A model generated the notes under the pieces. The model worked only from the letters and a program-made list of their open reading frames with translations. It had not been told where the DNA came from and made no database searches. 64,000 nucleotides of DNA. Origin: Selaginella moellendorffii (Eukaryota > Plantae > Lycopodiophyta). The translations under genes were made by a program, and so were the position numbers. The stretch's first letter is position 1; every line of letters begins with the position of its first letter. The stretch spans positions 1,941,374 to 2,005,373 of the forward strand of contig NW_003314282.1 of assembly GCF_000143415.4 (NCBI RefSeq). Direction: 5' to 3'. Of the stretch, positions 3,607 to 47,866 are shown in pieces.

Positions 3607-4478
3607 AAGTCTCTAGGAGCCATTTCAGTCAAACCCACTGCTGTGAGAGATTTTACGATTATACGTGGAAGGTGGCACACCTCGCAGAGGAGATTTAATT
3701 CGCGTAAGCTTATCCATTCCAGAAAACGGTGTTTCACGTACATATCCCAGATTACGGGGAGACGCAGCCTTAGGATAAATACTCGTGTTTCACCATAAGA
3801 GAGTAGCTTCTTCTTCTTCTTTCTTGCTTGATCCATCCCAACGATGAGGATGATCCTTCGATTGAACTGCAGTCTCCTTACTTTTGGTTGAGAGCCAGAA
3901 ACAGAAGGGGACCCCAAGAAGATCTCAGCCCCCTTATAAGTAAGTTTTTTTGATCTGTAATTCCTTGCCCTCTTTGTTGTGCTGGAATTTTGCCATATCT
4001 CTCTAATGATACAACTCGTTTTCAGTGTGGTCCTGACTCCTGACGATCCAATCGACGAAGAAATGCACAGTTTTGTGAAAAATACACCGGTGCTGTTGAA
4101 TGGGTTTTTTGGTGCTTTTATAAGTTCCATAGCTAGCTCTCTTGATACAACAACTTACTTTCTGTTTTTCTTTTCCTCTTTCGTTGACGACTTATGGAGT
4201 TCTGGGCAGCACTTTTCTGGAAGCTCTACACAGTCCAACTCTCAGCTCGATCAAGAAGTGAAAACAAACATGAAACCAACTCTTCAACTTTCTCACGAAA
4301 ATCTGTTTGCTTTGTCTTCCAGGACCAAAACTGTAGCTCTTTACAGATCCATGTGCCAGAATTGGTCAGCAGGATTCTCACAAACGTGGAGTGGCACCTT
4401 GTCTTCACAAAAATATGATTCATATTGTCTATTTGGATGAAATTTGTTTAAATGAGCATTGTTTATTTGCTTGAGCTT
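3300..4478 (+). repeat. Segmental duplication block A (paralogous to 12250-14826)
   Basis: Long near-identical tracts: 3600-3856 with 12540-12795, 3858-4400 with 13507-14545, and 4426-4478 with 14774-14826. Confidence 0.9.
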
Positions 4479-4559
4479 CAGTTATTATGAATGGTGCTAA
4501 GTTAAATTTTTGACTTTATTTTTGGTATAGATTGGTTGTGGTATAATCATGCCAATGAA

Positions 4560-7500
4560 GTTTTTCCTTTTTGTCTTATATTTTTTCCATTCCTCTTACT
4601 TTTGTTCTTTTTCATCCTTTTTTTATACTTTTGTTTCCATCATTTTTGTCTTTTTATTATTTCTTTTATATTTCTATATTACTCTTTTATTCCCTCTTTA
4701 AATCCATCGGATAAATTTTTATTTTGCAATTGTTGATTGGCTCACAAAAGAAGTATTTTAATCTCTTTGAATTCATTTATCGTTTGGGGCCAAGATTACA
4801 ACACATTATCCTATTTCATGTTCAATTAAGGTTCTAGTCACTAAAAGAAATTAAAATTCTAATAAAAAAGATGTTGGTGAAAGGTGTTATTTAAAAGTCA
4901 TAAAGTCTTTAGATATGTCAACTTCATCTTGTTATAAAGCTTGATAGGAATATTTACTTTTGTATTGACTATCGGCTGTTAAATTAATTGACTATCTTAG
5001 ATATATATTTTATTCCTCATACCATTAATCTTCTAGATTGTCTAGAGAAGAAGTATTAATTCACAAAATTAGATCTTGTTTCTAGGTATTAACAAGTGTT
5101 AATAGCTGAGAATGATGTCCTCAATACTATTTTCGTACACTATTAAGTTTGTATAAATTCTTAGTGATACCATTCAAATTAAACAATGTTCTAACAACTT
5201 TTAAGTGGGTGATGAATAAGGTTTTTTGTGATATGCTAGAGATAACTATTAACTTTATTAATAATGTCTTGATGCACTTAGAAGGGATGTGGGAGGAGCA
5301 TATCTATAATGCTCAAAAGGTGTTAAATCCATTATGGGAAGTTAATTTACAGTTAAAGTGGTTGAAATGTGTATTTTAGTCTAAGGACATAACTTATTTT
5401 GCATACTGTATTTCTCATAAGGGTTTGTAAGTTAATCTTGATAAACGTGTAGCTATTTTAAAGTTTCTTACTTCGAAGTATGTGAATGATGTGTAACACT
5501 TTCTGAGCAAGGTGCAATATCTCAATTATTTTGTTGATCATCTTTTTTATCGCATTGCATCATTGTGAGCATTGCTGAAGTCATCAAAATTATCTTTCAT
5601 TTGGTTTAAATACTGTGAATAAGCATTTATAGATCTCAAAAAGCTATTGATAACTCTTCCAATTTTAGTGTGTCTTGACTATATTTGACTATTCATTTTG
5701 CATGTGAATGCTTCAGATATCAATGTTGAGGGTGTCTTAATGGAAGAAAGTACTAATGTGCCTGGTTAACATCACCCCATTGCGTATACTAGCTATACAT
5801 TACAATTAGCAAAGGTGAACTAATCCACAATAGAGGAGTGTTTAGTAGTAATTTAGGGTTTTGATAAGTTTTATATTCTCAAACATTGCTTAAAAGTGAT
5901 CATGTTGCGGTTACTTCATTATGAAAGTAGATGGTTATATTGTTCGGTGGGTTTTGAAACTTTAAATATATAATTTCGAGGTTATTTATCACCTAAGGAG
6001 TTCTATAGTTGATAAAAATACCCTTTTTTGAACTTTTCTTCCTTCTTTGCTCTTTTCTCCTATTCCTAAAAAACTTGTTGTTCTAGCATCTATAAATTCA
6101 ACACAAAGATTCCATGTTATCAAAGGTTATATTTGATATTTAATGTCCATAAGGTGTGGAGTAAGATTTACTTTCTCTTATCGAGGTCTATAAGTTTAAA
6201 AGGTTAAATCGTGGATTTATAGGCTTTGTGAGAGGTTTGAGAATCTTACATTATTTGTTGATGACTTGCCACTTTGGCATATATATTCTTAATACTGCTT
6301 TGAGGTCAACCTTTTTTATTTTGTTGGGACTGATCTTGATGATCATTTATGGTTAGTGGTACCTTTGATATTTATTCCATGTTTTCTCCATATTTATTAT
6401 GACTTTTCTATTCTAGATAGGCATATGGGACATTTATCTGTGACTAATAAACTATGTAGATCTTTCTATTAGCCAAAGATGCAATATGATGTTATTTGAA
6501 ATATGCATAATTATGTTTGGTGCCAAGCCCATCATATTTCTATTTATGCTATGGAAAGATGGTTGGAGTCAATTACAAGTTTTTATCTATTTGAGTTGGT
6601 AACGTTTAATATGATAGAGCCTTTTCTACGGCTGACTATTGATAATGAGTATGTCATTATTGCTTTTGACCACTTAACTCATTAGGTGGAAGTTGATACT
6701 CTTGCTAGTACATTAGTAATTACTATTGAGTATTTCCTCCTCAATTGAATGGTATTTTAACATTCCTATTTGAAACAAATTCCTTCAGATAATGGTCTAG
6801 GAATAATTATGAAATATGTGAACTTTTAGTATTCAGATTGGGATGGTTATTTATTGCCTTACATATGTATATCACAAAGGTATAGAGTTTTATTGGTGCT
6901 TCACCATATAAATTTTTATATGGTGATAATCTGATATTACCAACAAAGTTAAGTTCAAACAATTTGTTTAAACCTTCAAAAGGATGATGGCAAGGTATGT
7001 GAACTTTTAGTATTCGGATTGGGATGGTTATTTACCATCTCTTTAATATACATATGTCAAAGTGGTACAAAGTCTACTAGCGTTTCACTATATAAACTTC
7101 TATATAGGCATGATCTAATATTGGCAATAAAGTTGAGTTTACATTAATGATTACCACAAGTTGCCAATGTTATATCTTGGGATCAATATTTAACAAGCAT
7201 TCTTCCATTTGTCCAAGGAAAGCCTATTAAACACTTAGGTCGTGTACAAGTGGAACAATAACGGTGCTGCAACTCTTATTATCATCCAAATGCAGAATAT
7301 AAAGTAGATGACTTAGTGATAATCTATCTTCCCTATCTTATAGTACATAGTTTGTCTAAGGAGCTCTTTGATCAATAGAAAGAACCATATCAAATATTGC
7401 AACAATAGGCCCATCCTCTAGAAACTATGTATGTGCAATAATTAAAATGCTTTATACAAAGGGATCAAGAACAACTGACACTATTTACAAATCCACCACT

Positions 7501-7710
7501 AATGTTCCTTTAAATCTTAGCCCATTCACTTCCATCCTTCCAAAAAGAGGGGATGATATGAAGTCGCCTATAATATTGTATATTAATAATAGTGTAATGG
7601 GATTTTGATAGCTATTTAGTTGGTTTGAATTTAGACCACTCACTCTTGAATATAAGTTAGGGTTTTTGGGCTAATGAATATACACATTTCTATATTCCCA
7701 CTCATAATAC
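4560..7710 (+). mobile_element. Heavily decayed Ty3/gypsy LTR retrotransposon (RT-RH-INT, PPT, 3' LTR), same family as 42859-47866
   Basis: Colinear with the intact copy: KLDLvsgy.., YKFLVIPFKLNNV, NEYVIIAFDHLT. PPT-like AAAAAGAGGGGATGA at about 7543. LTR remnant at 7558-7705. Many stops. Integrase segment duplicated at about 6800-6960 and 6975-7140. Confidence 0.85.
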
Positions 7711-7784
7711 TAAAATAAATAATATGTTTAAAATAGTTTATATTAATAAACCCGCTTACTTAATAAGCTAGACACGCAAACACT

Positions 7785-8230
7785 AGCTACCACGAAGATG
7801 GAAGGCCAAATACTCTCCTCCACCATATGTGAGCATGAGGCCCAAGTAAGAAATCACTTGGCTTCCTATTCATTAAATGGCTAGGTGCATCTGCCATCCA
7901 CAAACTTCTTACTAAAGAACTCATCCAAGGAAGCCAATTATGGCCTCTAGGAAATAGCTCTTTGTTGTAGACTCCCACTTGGTGAGTTTATGAGTATGGT
8001 TGATGATGATAACTGGCTTGATGGACTTGAGTTGAGATGGTGCAACCATGCATGAAAGTTGTTTATGATCCCTTAAATCATGTTCAATACTTTCCCATAA
8101 CAATTTAATGCCTTGAGCAAGCTTCCATGATAGAGCTCCCATCACACTTGTGTCCTTCATGAAAGACTAGAGTATACTCTAGATGCACTGTTTGCCATGA
8201 GATGTCAATGATAACCCCACAGAATTTGAG
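7785..8230 (-). pseudogene. Decayed inverted copy of the P-loop ATPase at 9647-10922
   Basis: DTSVMGALSWKLAQGIKLLWESI...KPVIIINHTHKLTKWES aligns with DASVMGVPAGEIAQGIKSFWESI...KPVIIFDEANKLAKWEG. DNA TGGCTTCCTTGGATGAGTTCTT and TTTGGCCTTCCATCTT match the long copy. Confidence 0.8.
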
Positions 8231-8894
8231 TTCCATAGCAACTTTCTTGAATCCAAGAGCATAGTGATTTGTCAAGACATAATGTACTTTATCTATATAT
8301 AGTTTTAAATATAAATATGACTTATGATATATATATATACACACACACATACATGTGTGTACTTTTATTTTATCACCAAGATTAAATACCTATTAAGGTC
8401 TCTTCCATCTGATAGCTATGCATATCATAAGACTTTTTATATTAAATTTATTCAATGTTTTTTAAAAAATAATATAATTTCTTAGAGATAATTTCACAAA
8501 TAAAAGTCTTCTACCTATAGTTGAAAATATTCTGTCTGAACAATATAAACCATCAGTAAAATTATATTGAATTTATAATTTCAAGACTATTATTATAGTT
8601 TTATTATTTAATAAATAAATAGATAAAATATTATAAAAGATAGATTATATTTGGAAGTTTGTATTATTTTTTACATAAGTATTACTAAATTTTTGTTATA
8701 CAAGAGTTATTTTTTTTCTTTAATTATTTTTTTCAGCTATAAATTTATATTAATCTAAAAAATAAAAATTATAATAGGTTAAAAATTATTATAAAAATAA
8801 TAAATTATAATTATAATAAAAATTATAAATTTCTTTTTTACATTCAAAACCTTTTTATAAGGGGTATATCATTGATAAAACCTAGGGACTCTGA

Positions 8895-9545
8895 CTAGAG
8901 GAACCAGTGATTGCACAGCATCTGTGATAAATGGCTCCTCGGGTTAGACACACATAACAGCAATAGCTGTGATCTGGAAGAACAAAAAGATACGTAGCAT
9001 GGATAGAAACGAGAGCTTTGAGAAGTTTTCAAGCCCTACCTATATCAATTTTTCATTGCGAACTGTCTGTTCAGCTTCAAATTGATGATCTCTACCATCT
9101 TGTTCCTGTCCTTGAGCCATGGCAATGCCTGGAAGAAGCCAGAAAATTAGTATTTTGCACGATCAAAGAAGGAAGTCTTGATATTGATTACCTGAGAGAC
9201 GAGAACTGCTCCTGGCAGTCATGTCCACAGGAACACGACCCGCAAGAAGCTCCAGCAGACAATACACATCCGATTTGGTCGTCAAAGTGTCCATGCAGTT
9301 AATGCATACCTGGAAGAAAAATGTGATGGTTTTTGAGAAAAGAACGCAAAGAGATGTTTTTTACATACTCAGGCGCTACGTAGCCTTGAGTTCCCAGGCC
9401 GGCTTTGTCCAAGCCCAGCTTTGCAAGGCCAAAGTCAGAAACTTTGGTGTTAAACTTGTCGGCAAGGAGGATGTTGCTGCTCTTGAAATCTCTGTGAATT
9501 ATGAGAGGGCTTACTATCTCATGCAAGTACTTTAGGCCTCGAGAG
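8895..9545 (-). pseudogene. C-terminal fragment of an RLK/RLCK (PBS1-like) Ser/Thr kinase
   Basis: [42 protein letters not shown] and HLTTKSDVY are present. The activation-loop segment is deleted, the N-lobe is absent, later exons have stops, and introns are retained. Confidence 0.8.
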
Positions 9546-9646
9546 CTACGTGGTCTACCACTGTTTCCTGTAAGATCACCAAAGTTGGAGCTCTAGGATC
9601 ATTTAATTAAAGTAGCATAAACTAAAATGTATAAGGGTTAGTGTAG

Positions 9647-10922
9647 ATGGGGGCTTGTCAATCCGTTACGAGCGCGGAGCTGGGGCAAAGCATCCGAAGT
9701 GTGGCGGGTGCGGTGCAGTCTTCCTACGGCTTCTTCAATCGCAAGGAGGAGCTGGAGAGGTTGGTCAGGATCCTGGATGCTGAGCCTTTACAAATCAATG
9801 TGCTCCTGGGTCCCAAGGATGCGGGAAAGTCGCTGTTACTGACGCATCTGCGTGAGCTCTGGAAAAGTTCCGCGGGCAGGAGCGCTTTGGCTCCGTTGGT
9901 CATCATCGACATGCGCATCAACGATTGCTCGTCTCCGGATGCCATGGCCGCTTTGCTGAGGACAGAATTGGGCGGCTGGCAGAAACAAGTCCGGGATTTA
10001 CTCGGGTCTCTGGGGGATGCGAGCGTGATGGGGGTTCCAGCTGGGGAGATCGCTCAAGGAATCAAATCTTTCTGGGAAAGTATTCAAGGCATCCGAGGGG
10101 CAGGACTTGTGGCGATCCAAGGGATCATCCAGAGATTTTTAGCTCAATACAAGTGCGTCAAGCCGGTTATCATCTTCGACGAGGCTAACAAGCTCGCCAA
10201 GTGGGAAGGCGGTCTACGACAAGGAGCTCGACGACTTGCTCGGTTTCATGGAGGGCATGACCAAGCAGACTGGGAGGGCTCATGTGGTCATGGCTTCCTC
10301 GGACGAGTTCTTCCGGTCGTGGCTGCGTAGGAAGTTCGCGGATGGCAAATTCAAGACAATAGGACTCGGCCTGTTTTGCGAAGATGAAGCCAAGCAGTTT
10401 TTCTCCGAGCACGTCGCACCAACTCTGGGCTTGAAGCTCCCGCAAGACTGGGAGGCGACTGTTTGGCCTTCCATCTTTGAGGCAGCTGGTGGAAGCCCGT
10501 ATCAATTGAAAACGCTGGCGCTCAACGCTTCTCTTGACAATGATGAGGACGCTACCAATCTAGTGGCGCAAGCCCAGGATCTCATAGACGTGGCAAGGGT
10601 GAACTTGGAGATGACTATGGGGCTTGGGGAAGGATGGACTCCAGCAGAGTTGACGGGGATCTTCAAGGCGATTGTGGAGGGTGGTGGTGCCGCGGCGTAC
10701 AGGACGGTGGTAGCCGAAGTTTTTGGTGGGCAGATCCACCACGGCAACAGAGTTGTGCACCAGCAGCTGGTGCGCAGCAATATCATCCATGTTCGCTTGC
10801 TTACCAAGGCTACTAAGTACAGAGACGTGCCTGCGCAGCACACTGCAACGGGTGAGTACCTCATGGCCACCAGTCCTGCGGCATATGCAGCCATGAAGCT
10901 GTGTTGTGATGTTTTAACATAA
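9647..10922 (+). CDS. Intronless P-loop ATPase of archaeal-ATPase/STAND type, with one frameshift near 10203-10210 (pseudogene or sequence error)
   Basis: FFNRKEELERL, Walker A VLLGPKDAGKS, Walker B VIIFDEAN, HVVMASSD and GGSPYQL (GxP-like). ORFs 9647..10330 and 10236..10922 join if 1 nt is removed. Confidence 0.75.
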
Positions 10923-12781: not shown

Positions 12782-13226
12782 ATGAGGATGATCCTAGAGG
12801 AAGCATTGCGCAAGCTGTTCATTCTGCATCTCTTGATCTCCGTTCTTCCGGCTTCCAGCGATTCAGGTAAGTTTCATTTGTTTTGGATCCTTTTCTTTCG
12901 TTTCTTCCTCACTCCATTTGTTTTCTTCCATTTGTGTAGACCGGCCCATGAGGAACATTGAGATCAGCCAGGTGGATACCGGCGATGTGCTCGAGTTCGA
13001 AGTGGTGATCATGAACGAGGGCGAGCGCAGTGTGTGCGGGATTCACGTCGATTGCGGCAAATTCGCGTCCTACAAGCTCGTCGATCCGGGGGTTTTCCAC
13101 CGCCTCTCGCCAGGTGATTGTCTCGTTCTGGATGGCGGACCTCTTGAACCGCGAAGGGAGGTTCGGTTCGTCTACATGAGCGATCGCAAGTTTCCCATGC
13201 ACCGCAGGGATGCCACCTTTTGCTAG
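12782..13226 (+). CDS. TAPETUM DETERMINANT 1 (TPD1)-like secreted cysteine-rich peptide, 2 exons, 123 aa
   Basis: Exon 1 (12782-12866) encodes a signal-peptide-like LFILHLLISVLPASS. Phase-1 GT-AG intron. Exon 2 (12940-13226): IEISQ..FEVVIMN..IHVDCGKFASYKLVDPGVFHRL..DCLVLDGGPL..VRFVY..C*, matching the TPD1 pattern CGxFxSxxLxxPxxFxR..DCLV..GxPL. Confidence 0.8.
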
Positions 13227-13299: not shown

Positions 13300-14235
13300 C
13301 GATCACTGATCAAGGTCTACGAGTTCCCGAGTTCCTGCTTTCGCAGATTTCAATCTTTACGTGAACACTGCTGTTTTCCTTTGATTTTCTGGTTTGTGTA
13401 GTCCCAATCGAGGAAGGAATGCACGAGCATGGTAGTATCTCTGACGATGATTTGAGCCGTGACGAGGTACATTGATCAAGTTTTTATGTACATCTTCTAT
13501 GTTTCTCGATTGAACTGCAGTCTCCTTACTTTTGGTTGAGAGCCAGAAACAGAAGGGGACCTCAAGAAGAACTCAGCCCCCTTATAAGTAAGTTTGTTTG
13601 ATCTGTAATTCCTTGTCTGCTTTGTTGTGATGGAATTTTGCCATATCTCTCTAATGATACAACTTGTCTTCTCTTTTGCTTTTCCTCTGTCATTTTCAGT
13701 GTGGTCCTGACTCCTGACGACCCAATCAACGAAGAAATGGACAGTTTTGTGAAAGGTACACCGGTGCTAGACCTTGATCGCTGATCAAGGTCTACGAGTT
13801 CCTGAGTTCCTGCTTTCGCAGATTTCAATCTTTACGTGAACACTGCTGTTTTCCTTTGATTTTCTGGTTTGTGTAGTCCTGGCTCCTGACGATCCAATCG
13901 AGGAAGAAATGCACGAGCATGGTGGGATGGTGAAAGTATCTCTGACGATGATTCTAGCTGTGACGAGGTACATTGACCAATTTTATGTACATCTTCTATG
14001 CTTCTCAATTGAACTGCAGTCTCCTTACTTTTGGTTGAGAGCTAGAAGATCTCAGCCCCCTTATAAGTAAGTTTGTTTGATCTGTAATTCCTTGCCCGCT
14101 TTGTTGTGCTGGAATTTGCCATAATGACACAACTTGTTTTCTCTTTTGCTTTTCCTCTGTCGTTTTCAGTGTGGTCCTGACTCCTGACGATCCAATCGAC
14201 GAAGAAATTCACAGTTTTGTGAAAAATACACCGGT
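13300..14235 (+). repeat. Tandem direct repeat, two copies of about 470 bp containing exon/intron-like pieces
   Basis: GATC(A/G)CTGATCAAGGTCTACGAGTTCC.. starts at about 13301 and about 13776. Both units end ..CAGTTTTGTGAAA..ACACCGGTGCT. Confidence 0.85.
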
Positions 14236-15148
14236 GCTGTTGAATGGGTTTTTTGGTGGTTTTATAAGTTCCATAGCTAGCTCTCTTGATGCAGCAACTT
14301 ACTTTCTCTTTTTCTTTTCTTCTTTCGTTGACGACTTATGGAGTTCTGGGCAGCGCTTTTCTGGAAGCTCTAGACAGTCCAACTCTCAGCTCGATCAAGA
14401 AGCGAAAACAAACATGAAACCAGCTCTTTAACTTTCTCACGAAAATCTGTTCCATACTTTGTCTTCCAAGACCAAAACTATAGCGCTTTACAGATCCGTG
14501 TGCCAGAATTGCCCAGCAGGATTCTCACAAACGTGGAGTGGTACCTTGTCGTCACGAGTTTCCTAAATGGCCGTGCTCCCCCGCCACGAACGTTCTTAAC
14601 GCTCCGGGAATCATCAGACTTGCATTTTGCGGCCACAATCTAGTGGTTTAAGTTGTCAAAATAATCGTTTTTATTTTTCCTTTGTTTTCTTTCAGCTACA
14701 TGGCCAAAAATTCTTTGTGGAGCCAGAAGAATGAGGAGCTTAGAAAATTCTCAAATAAAAATCTGATTCGCATTGTTTGTTTGGATGAAACTTGCTTAAA
14801 TGAGCATTGTTTGCTTGCTTAAACTTTGCAGTGAAGGCGGCCAGAGAAAAAGAAACACCCACAAGCGGCCCTTGTCGCAAAAATGTGAGGAAGATAGTGT
14901 TGCCACCCCGGCTTTTCCAAGTAGTTCACGTCGGTGTAGAGCGCCAATGAAAACAACAATGTCGTTGCAACTACGTATCTATAATACCAACAGAATCAAA
15001 GACTAGAATGCTTTGCGGCACCAAACTAAAATCTTCCAGGAAACCTTCATGGAAACTGGAAAGGGTTTGGCTGGACGAAGATCCAACTCGATGAAAAAAC
15101 TCCGAAAGACTTACAAGCTCAGACCACTCTCACTTAAGATGCCCACTT

Positions 15149-16188: not shown

Positions 16189-18176
16189 TCATTTCTTGGC
16201 TTTCTTGAGTGGTGGAGCTCCATCTTCATCGTCGTCGCCATCGTCGTCCTCTTCATCCTCACCTCCATCGGCTCCTTCGCCATCGTCCTCCACTCCACCG
16301 TCTTGATCGCTCTCTTCTTCTTCCTCGTCGAATCCAGGAGCACCATCAACACTGGCGATGGCATTGTTGTTTCTTGCAGCAGCAGCGGCAGCGGCAGCAG
16401 TAGGAGCAGCGTTTGATCCAACCCCCTGTTGCTGCTCGCCATCTTCCTCCTCTTCTTCTCCATCCTCCTCTTCCTCTTCCTCCTCCTCCTCGCCTTCTTC
16501 CTCCTCTTCGTTGCCACCATGGTCGGGATCATCGCTGTCACCTTCGTCTCCACCGCTCTCACCACCACCGTCCTCCTCCTCTTCCTCGTTTTCTACTTCA
16601 TCTTCGTCGCTCACTTTCTTTTTCGGAGTCCCGGCTCTCACAGCACCACCGGTGTTAGCCTCGCTGCCTCTGCCTCTTGCTGCTGTGAGGACCAGCGCTG
16701 ACAAATCCTCCCCATTCACAGTCTTCTCGGGATCTTGCAGTGCATTGTCTGCAACACTGGCTTTACATCGGCCATTCTACAAAAAAGCGTATATAAGTTC
16801 AGTCTTGTCAAGAATGTAGTCCCTACCGTTTTCTCTTCTACAAGACTAGATATGAGCTGCGGCATCCGTAGTACGCTAGCGTTTCTGGAGAAGCAAACAA
16901 ATCAGCGAGGGAGAAATTCACTTTAGAATAAAACTTTTCGTATACCTCAGGCAACCATCGCCTTGACCATTAAGCTCCTGTCAAACAAAAGAAATTACGT
17001 GTGAAAAAACTTGACAAAAAGAGAGAAATAAAAAGAGTACCGTTGCGAGAGCAGAACAAAAAGCTGTAATCTGCTCCAGGAACTGCTTATCACTCTCAAG
17101 TACTGCGGCTTTCTGCAATTCAGCATTTCTCCATCAGATGAAATCGCTGGATCAACGTATCAACGACCACAAAATGAGACGACAGAAAGAAAACGAAACT
17201 AAATGTAATTGCAAACACTGCAAGGAAACAGCAATAAACAAGAGCAAAGTTCGTACCTGTTCGAATTCTGGAGCAGCCAGGCATGCCGCTGCATATAAAG
17301 AAACATTGATACTGTCAGCGTCGTGGCAATTTTTCCAAAGAGAGTTCTCACATGTTAAAGGATTTTTGTCAAACAGATATCCGTACAACACCTTCAACAG
17401 CTCAATACCACGAGTTCCTCCTGCGAAGAAGTGAGAAGAATGATGTCAAACGAAAGCTTGAGCAGATTACCTTCTGAGATACTCTTGGCAAGCTGATGTA
17501 TCCTGTCGAGCACGCAACATCTGGATACACAAGCGAATGTTACGAAAACCATACATCAGACGAGAGCGAACTCGTACCTTGTGTCTCCATACACAAAGTA
17601 CTTGCTGGCCAAACAATCTAGGGGAGTGGCAATAGTGCCTTTGCTCTCAATCTGCACAGCATACGAGTTGTTAGAGATGCATAGAAGCTAGAAATTGAAA
17701 TAGGCTTACCAGAGAGCACAAAATCTTCGCAAAGAGATGAGTTTCAAACCTTCCAGCCTCCGTTCGGACAAGCTTCACGAGTATGTTAAGAGCCATCCTC
17801 TGCCAAAGTCGAGGATAAAACAACACGTCGTCAGTTCTCAAAGACTAGCCCATCAAAATCTTACCAACAGATCTCAAAGCTCTCTGGAATCCTAAGCTAA
17901 AACGGAAAAAGCACGACTACTAGAACTAGAAAGGAAAGAAATGCTTACTTGTGCCGCTGGAGGTACTCCTGACTTGTTCAGCAGCTCCAGCAAGCCATCC
18001 CTGGCTTTGCTCTTGGAACACTCAGCTGCACCATTTGCTGCCTCGTCCTTGTTCCATGGGGCTTTTGCCTCTGCAGTGCTTACGAACACTCCTGCTGCCT
18101 CATCAACACAGCCATTCTGTACGACTGTTGTCAAGCCAGCAGCCATTGCCAAAGTAGTCTCCCCCTCACTCAGCAT
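16189..18176 (-). CDS. Multi-exon protein with a NOC4 N-terminal-like region and a long D/E acidic tail ending in a basic NLS
   Basis: RMALNILVKLVRTEAGRFETHLFAKILCSL/IESKGTIATPLDCLASKYFVYGDTR resembles plant NOC4 N-terminal helices (from recall). About 130-aa acidic tail, C-terminal PPLKKAKK. The gene itself is well supported; the family call is tentative. Confidence 0.5.
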
Positions 18177-18788
18177 TTCTCCTCCTCCAACAGTAAAAGA
18201 AAAAAAAAAATTTTAAAGGACCGCTACCAGGAAACTAAAATCTCCACCTCCCTCACGAAAAACCAGCAGCTGAAGAGACAGAGCTCAGTTCCAAAACTCC
18301 ATGAGCACTTCCAAACCAGACTGAACCACCATCATCCAAAGCACATCCGCCCCTCCAAACAAAATCTACAGCCGCCGCCGACTCTCTCACTCTCTCTCCT
18401 TCAGTGGGATGCCATTCCACGGGAGAAATAGACGATGATCCAACGGCACTCAGCCATCCAGAACGCATATCCCCTGTATATCCTCCACATGTGACGGGTG
18501 GGCCTGTTGCCCGAGTCTGCTGTTTTGACTTGAACTTAAGCCACCTCCAAATCCCAAAGATAAGAAAACCACCCGTCCCTGCTTTCCTGCCCGGACATTA
18601 AATCTCGGCCTCGTAGGACTGTGTGCTGGATATTCTGCTGCAAACACCGCGTCTTTGTCTAACTTTGCCTTCCTGAAATCCTTCCACCCTCCACAAATGA
18701 GTAGAAAAAAAAGAAAAAAAAAAAAAAGTCCGCCCGAGAGAGCCTCCGAAATACCTGCGTAGTGTCCCAATCCTGTCCGACTGACTGA

Positions 18789-20255
18789 CTAGCCGTTCCT
18801 CGTTCCATCTACCACCATCTGACCCACGGATCGCACTGGACCTCCTCCAAATCCCATTGCTGTTTGATACTGCCCGACAAAGCCTGCCAAAGCGCTTCGC
18901 ACGCTCTCCCCGTAAACGTCTGGATCCCCGTCCACCACCGCCGGCTCCCGCTGCTCCAGCTCCTCCTCCACCTCGGGCATCGCCTCCCCGTTGTCGATGA
19001 GGAAGTTCTGGAGCACGCACGACGCCGCCACGATGAACGGCAGCAGCTCGATGCTGTCCACCCGCTGCGTCGTCTTGAGCAGCTGCCACTGCTCCTTGAG
19101 CATCCCGAAAGCTCGACGCAGCGGCCGCATTGCATGCCTGTGTGCCTTGTTGAAGAGAGCAGTCAGATCGAAGCTCGAGTCCTCGGGCTGGGAGTATGGA
19201 GTGATGAGCCACGGCTGCAAGTTGTAGGAGCGGTCTCCGAGAACGTAGCGAGGAATGAAAATGCCACCACCGAGGTCCAGCGGAGGTCCTTGGAGAAGTT
19301 CATGGCTCTCTCGAACTCGCGAGTAGAACCTCGTCTTGAGAAGGATGGCGGCGGGAGGGATGCATCCCGGCCAGCCCACTGAGATGTCGAGAAACCGCGA
19401 GCGAGAGTCCACCACCCCTTGCATCACGACGCTGTAGTTCCTGGTGTGATCGAAGTAGTCGATCCCCATTTCTCCCGGCGGCCTCTCCACGGCAAAGTTG
19501 GTGCAGCCAAGAGCTCCACAGCAGTGTGGCAATCCTACAGCGGCGAACTCGCCGGAGATGCTCGTCAATCTCTCGCTCGACGTCGGGAAATCGAACAGGT
19601 GGCCCAGCTTCTCCTCCAATCCCTTGCAAACGTCGTAGAAGGCCTTGGAGCAGCTGCCAGTGCTGATTCCAAACTTGCGAGCTACGACTTTGATGGTCGC
19701 GCCGTGAGCCAAGCGGTAGAGCGTCGCGGCCAGCTTTCGATCGGCGGGGATGTCAGCGGGCTCTTGTCTCTCGAGAACCGGGCCTAAAATCTCCAGCAGC
19801 CTCGCGAAACTGGCCCGAGACATCCGGAAGCTCGCCTTCCAGTGGACATCGTCACCGCTTTGGAAAACATCGTGAAACCGAGGAGGAGCGATCGTATCCC
19901 CCATCGCATGGACGGCCTTTCTCAGGCTCGACGAGGAAGAATGGAGCTGGTGATCATCGTCGCTGGCGATGGCCGGATCAGCAGCGGCGGCCGCGGCATC
20001 GCTCGCCGCCGTGAGCGAGAACATAGTCTGGAGCTTCGCGAGCGCGCTGCTGGTAGCCTGCATTGACGATTCCAGGGCGGCCGCAGCATTGCCGGGGAGA
20101 AGCACAAGCAAGCTGTGCTCATCCACGAATCGCTGGACAAGAACCACTGCCGTTGCCACTGCTGCTAGCACTACTGCTACCTCTTCGCGGCAGAGCTTGC
20201 CCTTGAGCCGTCGCGGGGCATCGCCAGAGCCATCGCCAGCGCCATCGCCGGCCAT
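18789..20255 (-). CDS. ALP1/HARBI1-like Harbinger transposase-derived protein, intronless
   Basis: FRMSRASFARL, KLAATLYRLAHG (HTH), CCGALGCTNF, YSVVMQGVVDSRSRFLDISVGWPG, VLGDRSYNLQPWLITPY, FNKAH..RRAFGMLKEQWQLL, ASCVLQNFL. No TIRs noticed. Confidence 0.85.
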   Translation of the reverse strand: MAGDGAGDGSGDAPRRLKGKLCREEVAVVLAAVATAVVLVQRFVDEHSLLVLLPGNAAAALESSMQATSSALAKLQTMFSLTAASDAAAAAADPAIASDDDHQLHSSSSSLRKAVHAMGDTIAPPRFHDVFQSGDDVHWKASFRMSRASFARLLEILGPVLERQEPADIPADRKLAATLYRLAHGATIKVVARKFGISTGSCSKAFYDVCKGLEEKLGHLFDFPTSSERLTSISGEFAAVGLPHCCGALGCTNFAVERPPGEMGIDYFDHTRNYSVVMQGVVDSRSRFLDISVGWPGCIPPAAILLKTRFYSRVRESHELLQGPPLDLGGGIFIPRYVLGDRSYNLQPWLITPYSQPEDSSFDLTALFNKAHRHAMRPLRRAFGMLKEQWQLLKTTQRVDSIELLPFIVAASCVLQNFLIDNGEAMPEVEEELEQREPAVVDGDPDVYGESVRSALAGFVGQYQTAMGFGGGPVRSVGQMVVDGTRNG

Positions 20256-20390
20256 CACTCCCTCCAGCCCTAAAATGTTTCTCTAAAAGGTTTTCTACAA
20301 ATCTATCTATCGCAAAACGAAACTTATTAACCTTGTCAAACAAAGAAGAAAGAGTGTGAGAGAGATAGCGAAGAAAAACCATACCGGCGA

Positions 20391-22436
20391 TCAGATCACT
20401 CCAAGGGAGAACAAGCTGCGCTGGTGGAGATCACAGACTTCGATCACTCGCGAGCTCGACGATTCACCGTAGCACTCGATGGTGTTGACGAAGTGATGCT
20501 TCTTGTCCAGCCCCGCCACCACGCAAATGGATCCGTCCACCACCGCCGCAGCACCGTGAGCTCTCGACCCAGCCAGTGGCTTGATCGTCTCCCACTTCCC
20601 AGCGCGAGGATCAAAGCGCTCCACACTCGCCAAGTAGTCGCAACCATCGTGGCCCCCGAGCACGTAGACTTTGTTGTTCCAGGCAGCCGACTGGAACCAC
20701 AGCCGCTTGGAGCTCATCGGCGGAAGGCTCCTCCAGATGCCCTCGCGTGGATCAAACCGCTCGGCCGAGTCGAGGTAGAGGTTCCCGTCTGTTCCACCGA
20801 AAGCGTAGATCGATCCCTCCACCACCACCGGAGAGAATGCGCCTCGTCTCTCCATCATTGGGACCGAAGCCATCCATCCCACCTCCTGATCGAATGACTC
20901 CGTCTCCGAGAGGAAGGCAGTGTCGTTTCTACCACCGAGAGCAAAGATCCTGCTTCCAACCACGGCTCCTCCGTGGTATGCGCGAGCTTTGACCATCGGC
21001 TTGCTCAACACACTCCAGACGTTTCCTTCCGGATCATACTGCTCGGTCGAGGTCACGTTGGTCTCTCCAATGGTGCCTCCAAACACGTAGATCTTCCCAC
21101 TCAAAACTCCGGCCGCGGAACACGATCGTGGTGCTAGCAGAGGCGCTGCCTGCCAGAGCTCGCCGCCACGCAGCACGAACTTGTCCACAGAGCGATCTTT
21201 CCCTTCGCCACTGGAGCCACCGATGAGATACAACGCCTGAAAGGTGGCCAAGCGCTTCACCGCCGCCACCTCGGCCTTGAGCTCTTGGAGTTGCCCCGAC
21301 AAGCTGATGCTCACGTTGGCAAGCTCCAAGTTCTTGGCTCGGACAGCATCCAGCTCCTTGAGACACTCCCCTTTCACTCTCAGCTCCTCCATCGTCTTGC
21401 CCAGCCGGATCTCGGTCTCACGCATCTCCGCCACAGCGTCGGAGCACAGCCGCAAGCTTTTATCCACCGCTTTCGCGACGGAAGGATCAAACTGCCCTCC
21501 GGAAGCTAGCATCAAGCTCCCCATGTCGGTAGGCATCGCGGCGCCAAAGATGATCTCTTGAGACGACGAGGAAGCCGAGACATTCTTGTCCTCGGGAGGA
21601 TCGACAACCTTGAGCTTCTCGAGGATACGATCCAGCACTGTCGAATTGTCCTCGGACTGGAGAGCCTCCTGGACCATGAGTTGTGCTGTAGGAACTGCCG
21701 GAACAATGTACTCTTGATCTGCATCACTGGAAGGTGGTGACGGCGCTCGAGGACCCGGAGGAGGAGGCGGCAAGTTCTCGGACTTCACAGCTGCTGGCGG
21801 TGGCGGTGGTGGCGGCGCCGCTTGAGGAAGAACAGCCGGAGGAGGAGCTGCTACCACTTGCTTCCACGCCGTGGGAGCTTTGTTGCTTGGCGGCGGAGGA
21901 AGAGGAGGAGGAGCCACCACAGGGCTCTTCGAAGAAGATGCTACCTTTCCCTTGGTGAAGAGTCCCACAAGCTCGTGCATTTGCTTCCTGGTAAGCTCGA
22001 ACATGAATCGCCCCGCGGAGACGTAGTTCTCCTTGATCACTCTCGAGAAAACCTTCTCCGGCAGTGGAGCGCACTGGATTTCCAGCCGGACACGAACCTG
22101 GCAGGGGTACTTCGTCGGCGCGCTACCGTTGGGGCTCCAAGCGTGAGGATCGATCGAGAGAGCGCCCTTGCCGGTGGCCGCGAAGACGCCGTGGAGCGAT
22201 CGATCGTCGTAGTTGAACAAGAAGAGGGGCATCCCTGCGTCGATGTGCTGGACGTAGGCGATGTGTGGCCGTGGCAGTCCGAAAAGATTCTTCCTCAGGC
22301 ACTCCTCCATCGTCTCGCCGTTGCAAACGAAGATCACCGCGCCAAGATCGCGCGGATGGAGGCCGCGGTGATGGAATGCTGCGCCATTCCATGTCGTATC
22401 GACGAGGACCGTGTGAGTGTGGCGACCGGCGCCCAT
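20391..22436 (-). CDS. DCD domain / Pro-rich linker / coiled-coil / Kelch-repeat protein, intronless
   Basis: GAVIFVCNGETMEECLRKNLFGLP..LFLFNYDDRSLHGVF (DCD), followed by repeated GG..W Kelch motifs (IYVFGG, IFALGG, IYAFGG, VYVLGG; RFDPREGIW). Confidence 0.9.
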   Translation of the reverse strand: MGAGRHTHTVLVDTTWNGAAFHHRGLHPRDLGAVIFVCNGETMEECLRKNLFGLPRPHIAYVQHIDAGMPLFLFNYDDRSLHGVFAATGKGALSIDPHAWSPNGSAPTKYPCQVRVRLEIQCAPLPEKVFSRVIKENYVSAGRFMFELTRKQMHELVGLFTKGKVASSSKSPVVAPPPLPPPPSNKAPTAWKQVVAAPPPAVLPQAAPPPPPPPAAVKSENLPPPPPGPRAPSPPSSDADQEYIVPAVPTAQLMVQEALQSEDNSTVLDRILEKLKVVDPPEDKNVSASSSSQEIIFGAAMPTDMGSLMLASGGQFDPSVAKAVDKSLRLCSDAVAEMRETEIRLGKTMEELRVKGECLKELDAVRAKNLELANVSISLSGQLQELKAEVAAVKRLATFQALYLIGGSSGEGKDRSVDKFVLRGGELWQAAPLLAPRSCSAAGVLSGKIYVFGGTIGETNVTSTEQYDPEGNVWSVLSKPMVKARAYHGGAVVGSRIFALGGRNDTAFLSETESFDQEVGWMASVPMMERRGAFSPVVVEGSIYAFGGTDGNLYLDSAERFDPREGIWRSLPPMSSKRLWFQSAAWNNKVYVLGGHDGCDYLASVERFDPRAGKWETIKPLAGSRAHGAAAVVDGSICVVAGLDKKHHFVNTIECYGESSSSRVIEVCDLHQRSLFSLGVI

Positions 22437-24303: not shown

Positions 24304-25548
24304 TCACGTGTGCAGCAGCAAAGGTCGCAGCCAAGCCTCCACCCGTATCATGTCCGGTCTCTGCATGGGATCTCTCTGAATACACTTGAGAGCTGTCTGC
24401 TGGATCGTTCGTGCCTGACTCCCGTTGTACGACTTCTCCAACTTGGGATCCATAAATCGTTTCAGCTTTTGCTTCAGCAAGGCCACGGGATTCAATGCCG
24501 CGACGTCCGTTTGTCCGGAGAGCAGCACGCAGAGTACAACTCCGAAGCTATACACTTCGCTTTTGGTCGTCAAGGCCCCTCCAGAGGACACTTCTGGTGC
24601 AGCATAGCCTCGAGTATTTGTGATCATCTCGTCGGGGCGGAAAATCGGCATGGAAGTGAGCTTCACAAATCCGGTGTCCGCAATATAGGGGGTGCATGTC
24701 GGGGGTGAATCGTCAGTGGCTTCTTCCAGCAGGAGATGGACGTTTTCGGACCGGATATTCCCATGGAGAACCGCCGTCACCACGCTGCTTGCTGGCCCAT
24801 TACTCGTCGCCGCTGCTTCTCTCGAGTAGTGAAGCCTGGATAGGCCTCTCGCAACCAAGGCGGCAACTCGGCAGCGACAGCTCCAACTCAGGCTGGAATT
24901 TCTGAGCACGTCAGTGAGGCTCCTCAACTTCGGCATGAACAGTAGCAGATATGAGTGAGTGAGGCTGAAGCCCAGGAGCGGCAGGACGTTGCATCTCCGA
25001 AGAGATCCAAGGTTGACAGTTTCCTGCCGGATTTCCGCGGATTCTAGGTGTGTAAGCAGGTCAACGGCCTTGGTGAGCTCCAGTTTCCGTATCGACACCT
25101 CCTGCATACTGTCGGGGCCAAGCCGCAAGCAGCCATGGAAGCTCACTCTACCGGGCTCCTGGAGCTCGAGGAGATTCACAGCGACGTCCTCCATTGCGAA
25201 CTCCTGGAATTGGAACCACCATAGCTGTTGCTGCGCCTGGATCTCCAGCTCAAGAGCGGCGGCCGCGTCTTCTTCGTCGTCAGACTGACCGGGACTACCG
25301 CGTCTGGTAGTAAGTCGAGAAAGGAACAAACTTACCAGGACTGGTGGCACCAAGATTATGGATCCCAGTATGCTCACCGAAGCTGCCAGGTTCTTTGCGC
25401 CGCTGTGAGCAATTGTGGTCATGGCTACTGCGAAGGCTGCCACAAAGGAGACGAAGCAAGTTGCTATCATAGCCGCATCCTTGAGCCTGGTGGTGTTGCT
25501 GCTGCTGGTACTCGTGCTGCTACCTCGCCTGACGCAACACCAGGGCAT
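24304..25548 (-). CDS. Intronless receptor-like pseudokinase with two N-terminal TM segments
   Basis: Two hydrophobic stretches precede an RLK-type kinase (NVLPLLGF, RGYAAPE, LTTKSEVYSFGVVL, RPDM). It lacks the Gly loop and has HGN for HRD and DTG for DFG. Confidence 0.75.
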   Translation of the reverse strand: MPWCCVRRGSSTSTSSSNTTRLKDAAMIATCFVSFVAAFAVAMTTIAHSGAKNLAASVSILGSIILVPPVLVSLFLSRLTTRRGSPGQSDDEEDAAAALELEIQAQQQLWWFQFQEFAMEDVAVNLLELQEPGRVSFHGCLRLGPDSMQEVSIRKLELTKAVDLLTHLESAEIRQETVNLGSLRRCNVLPLLGFSLTHSYLLLFMPKLRSLTDVLRNSSLSWSCRCRVAALVARGLSRLHYSREAAATSNGPASSVVTAVLHGNIRSENVHLLLEEATDDSPPTCTPYIADTGFVKLTSMPIFRPDEMITNTRGYAAPEVSSGGALTTKSEVYSFGVVLCVLLSGQTDVAALNPVALLKQKLKRFMDPKLEKSYNGSQARTIQQTALKCIQRDPMQRPDMIRVEAWLRPLLLHT

Positions 25549-27822
25549 CCTTGATGGCAAAAGTGGTGAATTATTACCATATGATCCAGCTGCGCTTCTT
25601 CCTCAACTTGGAACCGGATGACTGCACACCCCCTTGCTCAGAGCTCTTCAAGAACAAGGGAATGAGGAGCTTTTGCAGCACGAAAAGCAGCCGCAGCAGT
25701 AGCAGCAGCAACAGCAGCGGTTGTGGCGAGCAGCAGGGAATTATGTGCAGATTGAGACATGAAAACAAACGCTGGTGACTTTCCTTGGGGAAGGGAAAAC
25801 GATTTGTGGGGGAGCAGAGGGTATCTACGAGCTACAAAACAACTTGAATCAGTCAATCTGATAAGAGGTCGGCACACGGAAAATAAGAGGTTTTGGGGAA
25901 AGCAGGCAGGAAAGAAAAAGAGGCGCTCAGAAAGGACTGACTTTAGAGGACATCTATGCAATGCGGGGGCCAAGAATATGGTAATGCACGCAACACTGTT
26001 GAGCCTCACTCGGCCTTTTCCGTGTTGCTGGAGCGCGACCTCTTCTCTGGAAGAATCTCAAGCATTTCCAAGGTACGCTTTTTCTTTTGCCATTTGTCGG
26101 CGGTAAGCGCGAGGTTAACCAGTTTTCTTGGTTTCTTTTCCATTCGCTAGAGTTAGTCAGCTGCTCTCAAGTTTTTAAACTTCGTATCCTGCTTCTAACT
26201 CTTTCGCTATTCCTGCGCAGCTTGGTCAAAAGGCGCAAAGGTGGCAGGCATAAACTCCTCACGATCGATTATCCTGGCTCCACGTTCGCCGATTGCGACA
26301 TGCCACCATTCTGCGCTTTGCGGTTGCGTTTGCGATTGCTGATGCAAACAAACAAAATACCGTAAGTTATAAGTTCCCAGACGTAACTTTGGTGGCCTGC
26401 GAACTAACTTATCTGCTTTTGTCTCGTCAGCTGATGAAGCGCTATATGCCTATGGCTTGCGCTGTTGTCAATATCGCACACCAACGCAGAGGTGTGGAGG
26501 CTCGAGGTTTGAAATCTTCGTCACTGTTCAAGCGATGGGGGCCGATGTGGAAAATCTCAAACCTCGATCTTCCGCGCCCCATTGTACAAAGACTTCGGTT
26601 AGCTACGGTAAGAGATTTTGAGTCCTCGAGATCGTGTCATTGGCTTTTTTTTTTTCCAGATTCTTTGCGAGAAAAAAAAAAGAGAAGAAAGTCGTATGTA
26701 AAGCGGGACACACATGTACCCGAGAAGGAACGGATGAGTACGTCCTCGCCTTCTGAATTGGAGGTGAGCTGTTCACCGCTTATAGAAAAATCATAATCGA
26801 AGTCAAGATATATAATCTGGGCTACAGGGAAGATTTTTGTTCTTGTCATCGTCCGTCGAGACACGCTCGTGGAAAAAAATTAACAGAACAGGGCCGACGT
26901 GGCGGCTACGTCATGGTACGGAGAAACGCATCTTAGCCGTTGGCATCCTACGGCGTCGATCACGCCGTACCACAGATTTGAATGGAGAGGGGGATATTCG
27001 CCTCTATCATCCCTGTCCCATGGATGCGAATGGGAATTTGGAATGTCTTACAAATGGGAAGCTCGATTGTGTGATTTTGGAGGAAGAATCCATCGCATTT
27101 TATCAGCGCTCATCGATTCGAGGCCGAGAGAGAGAGAGAGTGGGAGCGCCCTTTTTTGGCATGGAGCTAATAAATCGCAGCGTAGCGATAATTTTGTTAA
27201 TTCCTGCTGTTTCGAGCCAGCGGACTGACACAACACACGCTCTCCTTTTACTGCTGCTGCTCTGCCCCTTCCAACAAGAAACAAAAATTCGCAGGCAGCA
27301 GCAACAAAAGTGAGAGATGAAAAAGGAGAAAAAAAGCAAAGCAAAGCATTCGAAAGAGCATGAGAAGCCCGAGAGAGCTCTCACTCTTTTCCCTTTTCCA
27401 TTCCCTGTCTCGCTCGCTCGCCCAAGCGCAATTCGACTACGAAGATCGGGGAAGAATCACCGAATTTGGTGCGGGAATTTGAGTAAGCATTTAGCTGTAG
27501 GCTAGGCAGCCGCTCCAATCCCGATAGAAAACAGGGGAGCTCGATTCTCGAAACTCGAGCTCCAATTCCGATGGATTCGAGGGTCGCAGAGATGAGGGTA
27601 GGAATGCCGCTAGGCCCAACTGGTTGATTTGAGAGGATTTGGATGGAATCCCAGCGTTTGGGCCAAAACAAGAAGCTGGCAAGAACAGCACCTCAAATTG
27701 ATCGAGGCTAGCTAGATTCAGAAAAATGCGGCATGGTGGTTGATGCGTGCCAGTGGAATCATTAATTCCCATCCAGAAGGTTAGATAGATTTAGATCCAG
27801 CAGTGGATCGGGTGGAAAGAAA

Positions 27823-45800: not shown

Positions 45801-47866
45801 GACGACGAACAGGAACCATGATTGGATGAGCATCCCCGGTTGGAATGGGATGACGTGTGGCAATCTTGGCCCCAGACGATAGGTCAAAGTCAAAGAGATC
45901 AGAATACTCCTTCATGAGCTGGTCAACAGCTACAACACAAAGATCATCGGAGGGATCGGAAAAGGGAAGAGCAGAACAAGATGGAGACACAAGAGGAAAT
46001 AGTGGGGGAACAAAAGTAATGGAAGCAGAGGTAAAAGTAGAGGGACAAAGAGGTACGGAAGTGAGAGGAATGGATGAAACATAAGGAAGTATGAGACAAG
46101 GGGGAGAAGCCTCAAAGTCACACTTGGCATGATTGCGCTGCAACCAATCTATACCAAAAATGAGGTCAAAAGCTTGACTCGGCACCACCCGCAACAACTA
46201 CATCTCAAGCTCGAAATCGCCCACATGCACAACCAGGTCTACCTCATCTCGTGCACATGCATGTGTACGGCCGTTGCCATAAAGAATGAAAACTGGATCC
46301 GCCGCACGACGCAAATGTAGACGACAACATGTGGCAACAGGTCGAGCAATAGAAGATAAACTCGAACCTGTATCAACCAACACGGAGAGAAGAATAGGAG
46401 ACCTCTTGTTATAAAAACGAGCTTGGAGAGTAAACATTGGATGAACCGGTGCCGAGTGAACCCTTGATGATACTCCCAAAAGAAAGATAGAGGGGTCACT
46501 AACTTATTCGCGCAAGGTCCCTCCATTACTCGCGCGACTCCTCATTTCCCGAATGCACCTCGGTATCAAAACCTTCCACCGCAGCAGCACCAACGGGACG
46601 TTGCTGACGCCAAGGTCTCCACCCAGGAAATGGAGGTCGCCAATCCGGAAAGCACCGACAACGCCGATAAGTATGACCAACTTCATCACACGCCCAGCAA
46701 CGAACATCACGGCCATGACCACGTCCTCGCCCTTGTCCTTGGACTCGAGTAGCAGCAGCATCAACCTCCATGGGAACAGGACCATCACTCATAGGAAGTG
46801 GAGCTGAAGGACCTGTAGCAAGAAGTGGAAGAGGCGACGTCTCATAACGTTGTGCCAAATGAAGAGCATCGTCAAGAGTGGCAGGAGCAAGTGCATGCAC
46901 AAGTTCGACAAGATCTTGACGAAGTGCTGGCCACAACATTCCTAGCTTGATCCGCTCCGACATATTTGGCTCCACACGAAGCAAAAGATTTCGGAAACGA
47001 ATGCCAAATTGCATCACCGACTCAGATGGCCCTTGGCGAAGACGATGCAATTGTTGGAAGGCATCATCACAATCGTCAGCGTGTCCGAAGGCGCGTTTGA
47101 AGACATCCGGAAGAACACTCCAATCGCCACGAGTGGCTGCGCTCAATCCATTGTACCACTGCAATGCCATCCCTTGGAGACATGTGGGGAACTCACGCAA
47201 ACGTCGAGCATCATCCCAAGAATGATATGTGGCAATCACTGTGAAGTGATCGAACCAATGGTACACATCATCCCCAGGATTCCCACGAAAGAACTCCGGC
47301 CGAACACGAGGATTGGCACCAAGAGCAGAAGGAGTTGTACCATGTGCCGTGAACGCCGCCATCAACTGAGTTTAGTTGTTCAATTGCAAGCGCATAGCAT
47401 CAAGCAATTGAACCAACTGCTGCTCTAAAGTCAAAGGAGGAGATTGCGGATCGGCCATGAAGATGAATGAAAAAGAAAGAGCAAAAGAAGAGAAATGACA
47501 AAAAGCTGGAAAGAAATGGTAAATCTAGATAATGCAAAAAGCTAGATCTAAACCAAAATCCTGAAAGGAAAGAACAAAAGAAAGGAAATGGAAAAAGCTA
47601 GATCTAAACAATGCAAAAGCTAGATCTAAACCGAAATCCCAAATCCAAGCACTCCCCAGGGACAATCAAAGGTGCCCCTCATCTCCACCAATGTGAGTGC
47701 ATGGAATATGGAAAGAGAATACAGAAATGTGCATATCAATTAGCCCAGAAACCTTAACTTATATACAGGAGCGAGTGGTCCAGATTGAAACCAATCCGAC
47801 GGCTACCAAAATCCCACTACGCTAATATTAGTATACGGCATCGTAGCCGTACACTTGGCCTTCACA
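42859..47866 (-). mobile_element. Near full-length Ty3/gypsy LTR retrotransposon, 5008 bp (gag, PR, RT, RH, INT; no chromodomain seen; several stops and frameshifts)
   Basis: 175-bp TG..CA LTRs at 42859-43033 and 47692-47866, AATT on both flanks, PBS TGGTGGAGATGAGGGG, PPT GAGAGGAGGGGATGA. Gag CWACDEVGHTYRRC, PR VDTGS, RT KLDLASGYWQ..FIDD, RH VDASD, INT AYHPQSDGLVER, GPY module WKGPYRV. Confidence 0.95.

Follow-up and report, generated by a model that had tools for sequence, protein, structure and literature searches.

PF01637 (ATPase_2) is described as an ATPase domain "predominantly from Archaea". Its two solved members, PABY2304 of Pyrococcus abyssi (PDB 2qen) and SSO1545 of Sulfolobus solfataricus (2fna), have the same order of parts, namely a core, a lid and a winged helix. 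We know of no function for the archaeal proteins, so resemblance to them says little about the role of the Selaginella ATPase considered here. A second described system is Yme2/RNA12 (PF10443), the fungal "mitochondrial escape protein 2" of the mitochondrial inner membrane. The arrangement of an AAA+-type NTPase with a helical domain and a winged helix also recurs in ORC/Cdc6, CED-4 and the NB-ARC NLRs. In Arabidopsis, SPD1 (SEEDLING PLASTID DEVELOPMENT1) may carry a PF01637 domain. A literature search found no study of the eukaryotic PF01637 family.

The window, that is, the whole stretch of 64,000 nucleotides analysed from Selaginella moellendorffii (contig NW_003314282.1), carries on its plus strand, at 9647–10922, a GC-rich, intronless open reading frame (ORF) of about 424 codons that is split by a single extra G. 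An initial annotation had described a GC-rich intronless island in AT-rich flanks, and both the GC profile (0.53–0.58 within the ORF vs 0.11–0.45 in the flanks) and the open frames bear this out. The two open frames overlap (9647–10330 and 10236–10922, plus strand). Joined as 9647–10204 and 10212–10919, they read through as one homolog of the paralog at locus L001, whose 404-aa ORF is intact. The motifs listed in that annotation (FFNR..EL, Walker A and B, GGSP) and a C-terminal region of winged-helix size can all be read in the sequence. The parts of the gene are as follows.

9647–10204, plus strand: first 186 codons of the ATPase ORF (N-terminal piece), with the lipidation motif, FFNR..EL, Walker A and Walker B; 70% identical to L001.
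9647–9664, plus strand: MGACQS start, with Gly2 and Ser6 (N-myristoylation pattern) and Cys4 (possible S-acylation).
9809–9832, plus strand: Walker A, GPKDAGKS; G, P, G and K near-invariant in the family alignment.
10166–10183, plus strand: Walker B, VIIFDE, with the canonical Asp-Glu; of 58 family members, 55 have the D and 46 the E.
10211–10212, plus strand: extra G, a +1 frameshift right after Walker B (GGCGG vs GGCG in L001 and in L003, the locus on the second haplotype).
10212–10922, plus strand: remaining 236 codons (C-terminal piece, second frame), ending in TAA at 10920–10922; 73% identical to L001.
Within the C-terminal piece, plus strand: sensor region HVVMASSD, helical lid with GGSP (10488–10499) and winged helix from about 10635.

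The N-terminal frame reads FFNRKEEL and the second frame HVVMASSDEFF. GPKDAGKS and VIIFDE conform to the patterns GxxxxGK[ST] and hhhhDE for Walker A and Walker B, respectively.

The reading favored here, to which a probability of roughly 0.8 is given, is that 9647–10922 is one haplotype's allele of SELMODRAFT_413847, which would encode a PF01637 ATPase of about 424 residues inherited within the green lineage. The copy would be a segmental duplicate of an L001-like locus and would now be decaying.

Assignment to PF01637 was assessed with Pfam. The broken pieces each fall below the cut-off of 33.2 bits when taken singly (N piece, 33.1 bits, E 6e-8, profile positions 1–43; C piece, 16.4 bits, positions 133–225), yet they match the profile in the correct order. 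The intact paralog scores 64.9 bits against the same cut-off, and 56 of 58 relatives match. Pfam found no TIR, CC, LRR, WD40, TPR or other repeats, the only matches being PF01637 and generic AAA models. There was no match to the NB-ARC, Cdc6 or ORC models, nSTAND1 reached 21.4 bits (cut-off 27.1), and NACHT matches were confined to 4 of the 58 relatives and were sub-threshold. NCBIfam returned chance ABC-transporter P-loop matches only, and searching PDB sequences with the family profile was uninformative.

The fold was tested on an AlphaFold model of the intact paralog, calculated from a 58-row alignment, and not on the broken window protein. The model (pLDDT 92.1, pTM 0.89) forms a winged helix, with its strands and helices, over residues 312–403. 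Its top PDB matches were 2qen and 2fna (TM 0.59/0.67 and 0.55/0.62, respectively), followed at lower TM and high rmsd by ORC/Cdc6, CED-4 and the NB-ARC modules of plant NLRs. Shape comparison with the ESM Atlas yielded bacterial and archaeal PF01637 clusters (TM 0.75–0.80), a basidiomycete PF01637 cluster and fungal Yme2/RNA12. As modeled, the gene product is a stand-alone PF01637 AAA+ ATPase in which a P-loop core is followed by a helical lid and, at the C-terminus, a winged helix. Pfam and the paralog model thus agree with the proposed archaeal-type P-loop ATPase that ends in a winged helix and is free of effector and repeat domains, and the structure prediction that had been recommended gives the PF01637 fold. 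The protein had also been called distinct from NB-ARC, which agrees with the Pfam result. Membership of the STAND class (NB-ARC/NACHT) did not hold up, since these profiles were not matched above cut-off and there are no fused effector or sensor-repeat domains.

The Selaginella protein nevertheless differs from each of the described systems. Compared with 2qen and 2fna it is eukaryotic, is 15–17% identical, and has a Met-Gly lipidation-type start that prokaryotic members could not use. Its subfamily is spread across eukaryotes and has motifs of its own, HVVLASSDxFFxxWL, VCGG and SPAxxAM. The paralog passes the PF10443 cut-off (30.4 bits vs 27, profile positions 139–229 of 429), 21 of the 58 relatives match this model, and the Yme2 cluster resembles the paralog model by shape (TM 0.67 by query). 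However, only the ATPase core is shared. At 404–424 aa (Yme2 cluster, about 830 aa), the Selaginella protein has no RRM, transmembrane segment or presequence, starts with Met-Gly and lacks the full RNA12 architecture. For ORC/Cdc6, CED-4 and the NB-ARC NLRs, a Foldseek probability of 1.0 goes with TM values of 0.38–0.53 and an rmsd of 7–15 Å; in contrast to these proteins there is no Pfam match to their models and there are no fused domains. The predicted likeness to Orc/Cdc6 and STAND modules is one of architecture only.

Whole-gene alignment with L001 (82.6% nucleotide identity) showed one extra G at 10211/10212 to be the sole frame-breaking difference. A single extra base had been predicted, and the alignments with L001 and L003 confirm it; its position had been placed at 10203–10210, a few bases to the left of the true site. 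The frameshifted allele is predicted to give 186 native and 41 out-of-frame residues, with the ORF ending at 10330. In this truncated product the P-loop and Walker B would be retained and the sensor region, the lid and the winged helix would be absent; it is most likely non-functional.

Word-index search identified SELMODRAFT_413847 (P0001) of S. moellendorffii as 100% identical to the gene. In this 372-aa model, residue 120 is joined straight to the second frame and Walker B is dropped. Because the model jumps into the second frame, the frameshift is concealed by a false intron. False introns were observed in three annotated Selaginella models (window 9647–10922, L001 6001–7215 and L003 8001–10533). 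P0004 (457 aa) bridges frameshifts and reads through beyond a lost stop, and P0002 (353 aa) omits part of an ORF that is actually open over 404 codons. These results are of use for annotation, as SELMODRAFT_413847, 419458 and 425636 bridge frameshifts or skip an open frame by way of false introns, and two of the three models are haplotype alleles of one pseudogene.

The second allele, P0004 (SELMODRAFT_425636), lies on the other assembled haplotype at L003 (GL377640.1). Its flanks are 96.3% identical to the window over 8.3 kb, and the gene is 93.5% identical. In the L003 allele the ATG and MGACQS are preserved and the extra G is absent; three other lesions are present.

After window 9703: insertion of 7 nt.
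After window 10316: tandem duplication of 8 nt.
At the 3' end of the gene: deletion of 23 nt that removes the stop codon.

As assembled, both alleles of the reference plant are broken, independently of each other. A GC-rich run at 9700–9718, GTGGCGGGTGCGGTGCAG, is an indel hot spot, with 7 nt added on the other haplotype and 12 nt missing from a third allele.

Sequencing runs were examined as assembled contigs, not as raw reads. Run X1 contains a 714-nt contig with no differences from the window and with the extra G present; X1 probably consists of Sanger data from the genome project and is therefore not independent. The extra G is missing (one base left out at 10211) from contigs of X2 (DNA, 2024), X8 and X9. 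The last two are small runs, guessed to be RNA, and if they are, the locus is transcribed. Contigs of the L003-type allele occur in X8 and X9 (depth 5–11); the +8 insertion is present in both runs and the +7 in X9. X2 represents the third allele, in which the only change of length in the covered parts is an in-frame deletion of 12 nt at 9706. Since X2 lacks both the extra G and any frame-breaking change where covered, a working allele may exist in the species, and null alleles may be segregating at this locus. The recommended check of reads and of the other haplotype thus had a divided outcome, with the extra G seen in X1 and not in X2, X8, X9 or L003, and with L003 broken in other ways (+7, +8, −23).

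These contigs bear on an alternative in which the gene is functional, the extra base reflects an error of sequencing or assembly or else a rare private null, and working alleles of a membrane-tethered ATPase occur in the species. The absence of the G from X2, X8 and X9 and the lack of frame-breaking changes in the covered parts of the X2 allele point in that direction, as does the retention of Walker A, Walker B and all family motifs by the window allele. Nevertheless, the G recurs in X1 (a run that probably stems from the sample that was assembled), the second reference haplotype has been broken three times independently, with its +8 insertion carried by X8 and X9, and the allelic substitutions look neutral. 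A functional gene is accordingly considered unlikely.

The neutral appearance is drawn from the substitution pattern. The window and L003 alleles differ by 31 substitutions, distributed 7/11/13 over codon positions 1, 2 and 3, with a dN/dS of 0.63. Polarized with L001, the allelic changes comprise 17 nonsynonymous and 6 synonymous ones, which is near the neutral expectation. Against L001, dN/dS is 0.64–0.72. Values of 0.6–0.7 could also mean diversifying selection instead of decay. At the paralog locus (L001 on GL377607.1), the uninterrupted 404-aa ORF is found on one haplotype only, the other (L002) having lost the N-terminal half of the gene. Walker B of L001 reads DH and not DE, so that the glutamate found in most relatives has been lost.

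Decay remains the preferred reading, and the copy at 9647–10922 looks dead in the reference plant. As the window allele has canonical Walker A and B and no stops other than those due to the frameshift, its loss appears to be recent. The initial annotation had named dead and unexpressed copies throughout the genome as speaking against its proposal; this holds to a large extent, both alleles of this gene being broken in the reference plant. The copy is unsuitable for functional study.

Relatives were sought by two routes. Word-index protein searches returned Selaginella proteins only, among the candidates listed, with nothing added by an alignment-based one over at most 8000 candidates, and an exhaustive HMM profile search returned 342 proteins at E <= 1e-3. 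Taxon names were available for about 30 of the 150 relatives listed, so that the range of green-clade taxa is incompletely sampled. The best non-self relatives are proteins of the ferns Adiantum nelumboides (P0005, E 3e-52, full length) and Ceratopteris richardii. Next are proteins of green algae (Coccomyxa, Trebouxia, Myrmecia, Tetradesmus and Nannochloris) and of the glaucophyte Gloeochaete, and a further fern protein comes from Adiantum capillus-veneris. More distant relatives occur in the chytrid Borealophlyctis and the sponge Amphimedon. Selaginella itself has three further subfamilies (P0012/P0158, P0028/P0162 and P0111/P0163), each with two haplotype copies. The lineage expansion that had been suggested is borne out in part, with at least four Selaginella subfamilies found.

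A maximum-likelihood tree of 77 rows was calculated by quick search, with SH-aLRT support, midpoint rooting and an X at the break of the window copy; several of its branches are long. The window copy groups with L001 (99), then with the Adiantum protein (96), and then with P0006 and Selaginella P0012 (99). These groups are nested in a clade of 40 rows (99) in which every named row is from Viridiplantae, and the tree's other clade holds the chytrid and sponge sequences. The Adiantum gene spans exactly 464 codons and a stop and is thus intronless too, which makes the lack of introns a family trait.

The descent of the gene had been thought to be possibly horizontal, and a landing in Selaginella from prokaryotes, fungi, oomycetes or a virus was weighed against these results. 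The Pfam label of the family, the absence of introns and the GC-rich ORF in AT-rich flanks could each be taken to indicate such an event, as could the bacterial and archaeal clusters that are nearest by language-model features and the lack of a seed-plant protein among the named top matches. The label, the missing introns and the GC island are, however, insufficient on their own to indicate gene transfer. The fern ortholog is likewise intronless, and high GC is common to the ORF of the paralog (GC3 0.64–0.67). Top hits in fungi, algae, oomycetes or prokaryotes had been named as supporting transfer; those obtained are from the ferns Adiantum and Ceratopteris and from Coccomyxa, Trebouxia, Myrmecia and Tetradesmus. 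In the tree the gene lies among named Viridiplantae with a fern as sister, and several old Selaginella subfamilies have fern counterparts. The green relatives and the tree position are in keeping with inheritance in the green lineage with old duplications, not with transfer into Selaginella. Horizontal acquisition is not supported by the sequences and is judged very improbable. Vertically inherited orthologs across land plants had also been named beforehand as adverse to the proposal; this too holds in large part, orthologs being found in ferns. No seed-plant protein occurs among the roughly 30 named relatives, and this partly named list suggests loss or strong divergence of the family in seed plants. 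As a conserved and uncharacterised family it extends over green algae, ferns and lycophytes and, through more distant members, to a chytrid and a sponge.

Inheritance within the green lineage would have been followed by duplication in seed-free vascular plants, and the surroundings of the gene point to how this copy arose. Window 9713–10898 matches L001 6025–7188 (the ATPase) and window 8897–9543 matches L001 7997–8682, the 3' part of a minus-strand kinase gene called in L001 at 7870–9505. The orientation of the two segments has been kept and their order swapped relative to L001. Two relics lie upstream of the gene.

8892–9594, minus strand: truncated and decayed 3' part of a kinase gene, 80.6% identical to L001 7997–8682 (Pkinase, E 9e-12).
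7781–8160, minus strand: decayed inverted ATPase fragment covering approximately residues 122–282, with internal deletions; 39% identity over 66 residues (tblastn).

In the kinase fragment, the subdomain after SDVY is shortened. Placement of the ATPase inside a kinase intron was considered and rejected, as no kinase 5' exons were found on the minus strand downstream of the ATPase; the kinase piece is therefore a truncated copy. The ATPase relic contains an ORF at 7921–8160, forms inverted repeats (I1 and I2) with 10015–10087 and 10451–10491, and has an allelic counterpart in L003. Between the two relics, at 8400–8850, lies an extremely AT-rich stretch (GC 0.11–0.17). Window 4408–9037 gave no blastn match in the 18.5 kb fetched from the other haplotype. 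A short ATPase fragment (C-piece residues 40–95, about 80% nucleotide identity) was also observed about 1 kb upstream of the paralog, at L001 4798–4970 and L002 5684–5851.

The window locus and L001 have no flank in common except the kinase piece, and no common transposon. Because a piece of the kinase gene was copied along with the ATPase, the event resembles an ordinary segmental duplication. Judged from its layout, the locus is the footprint of a rearranged segmental duplication older than the haplotype split. Under the preferred reading, the copy would have arisen from an L001-like locus, taking the neighboring kinase piece with it, and would since have decayed by the +1 frameshift after Walker B here and by three different indels on the other haplotype.

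The gene had also been regarded as possibly mobile, and as cargo or part of a mobile element it would account for scattered fragments and copies. Relic fragments do occur near both paralog loci, and an ORF for a PIF/Harbinger-type transposase lies about 8 kb away. Both haplotypes carry that ORF as alleles, however, and the L001 locus does not have it. No terminal repeats were found to bracket the ATPase gene, its fern and algal homologs are ordinary annotated protein-coding genes, and the kinase piece carried along, the only flank that the loci have in common, fits segmental duplication instead. Carriage by a mobile element is regarded as highly unlikely.

The transposase ORF itself, at 18789–20258 (minus strand, 489 aa), has DDE_Tnp_4 and HTH_Tnp_4 domains; its allele in L003 is at 16936–18402.

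The N-terminus of the protein was compared with known lipidation signals. N-Myristoyltransferase prefers Gly2, a small or uncharged residue 3 and Ser/Thr6, and a nearby Cys allows S-acylation. MGACQS, with Gly2, a small residue 3, Cys4 and Ser6, fits the pattern, in agreement with the lipid anchor originally proposed, and the Met-Gly start is common to the nearest relatives. It is found in the L003 allele (MGACQS), L001 (MGSVAK, without Ser6), the fern protein P0005 (MGGAVS) and P0006 (MGAEAS), with Ser at position 6 (MGxxxS) in three of these four N-termini. The sister Selaginella subfamily P0012 has no Met-Gly start. The algal and opisthokont relatives have long N-terminal extensions that, by eye, look like organelle presequences. 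Since the Met-Gly start is common to the closest relatives, a lipid-anchored vascular-plant clade is plausible, and the Met-Gly-starting clade is a reasonable target for a first functional study.

In the favored scheme the intact ancestral protein would have been N-myristoylated at Gly2 and S-acylated at Cys4, and so held at a membrane. It would have bound and hydrolysed ATP, with the lid and winged helix serving nucleotide-dependent assembly or partner binding. Such a protein, tethered to a membrane, might have served as an ATP-dependent switch or as an oligomeriser, in the manner of Orc/Cdc6 and the archaeal ATPases. The immune role once suggested found no support, PADLOC giving no defense-system match for the paralog and only sub-significant P-loop matches for the pieces. 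A bolder and rather doubtful extension is that lycophytes and ferns have kept a PF01637 clade in which the organelle-type N-terminus seen in algal and opisthokont relatives was swapped for a myristoyl/palmitoyl anchor. Its members would be membrane-tethered nucleotide switches undergoing NLR-like birth and death with segregating nulls, and this locus would be one polymorphic null.

Other features were observed elsewhere in the window. In a second GC-rich island, 12918–13226 (plus strand) is an ORF with TPD1_C (Tapetum determinant 1, C-terminal; E 4e-21), also called in the other haplotype at L003 10929–11359. A repeat of about 470–500 bp follows in two tandem copies at 13301–14238 (80–98% identity by segment), with related copies at several places in L003. 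On the minus strand, 20391–22436 is an intronless ORF of 681 aa with a DCD (development and cell death) domain and Kelch repeats, and 45058–46197 is a reverse transcriptase ORF (RVT_1, E 5e-35) of a retroelement. Also on the minus strand, 24304–25560 is an open frame of 418 codons that encodes a divergent protein kinase domain (E 2e-12 to Pkinase); over 42 nt it matches the kinase gene beside the ATPase paralog in L001 and L002.
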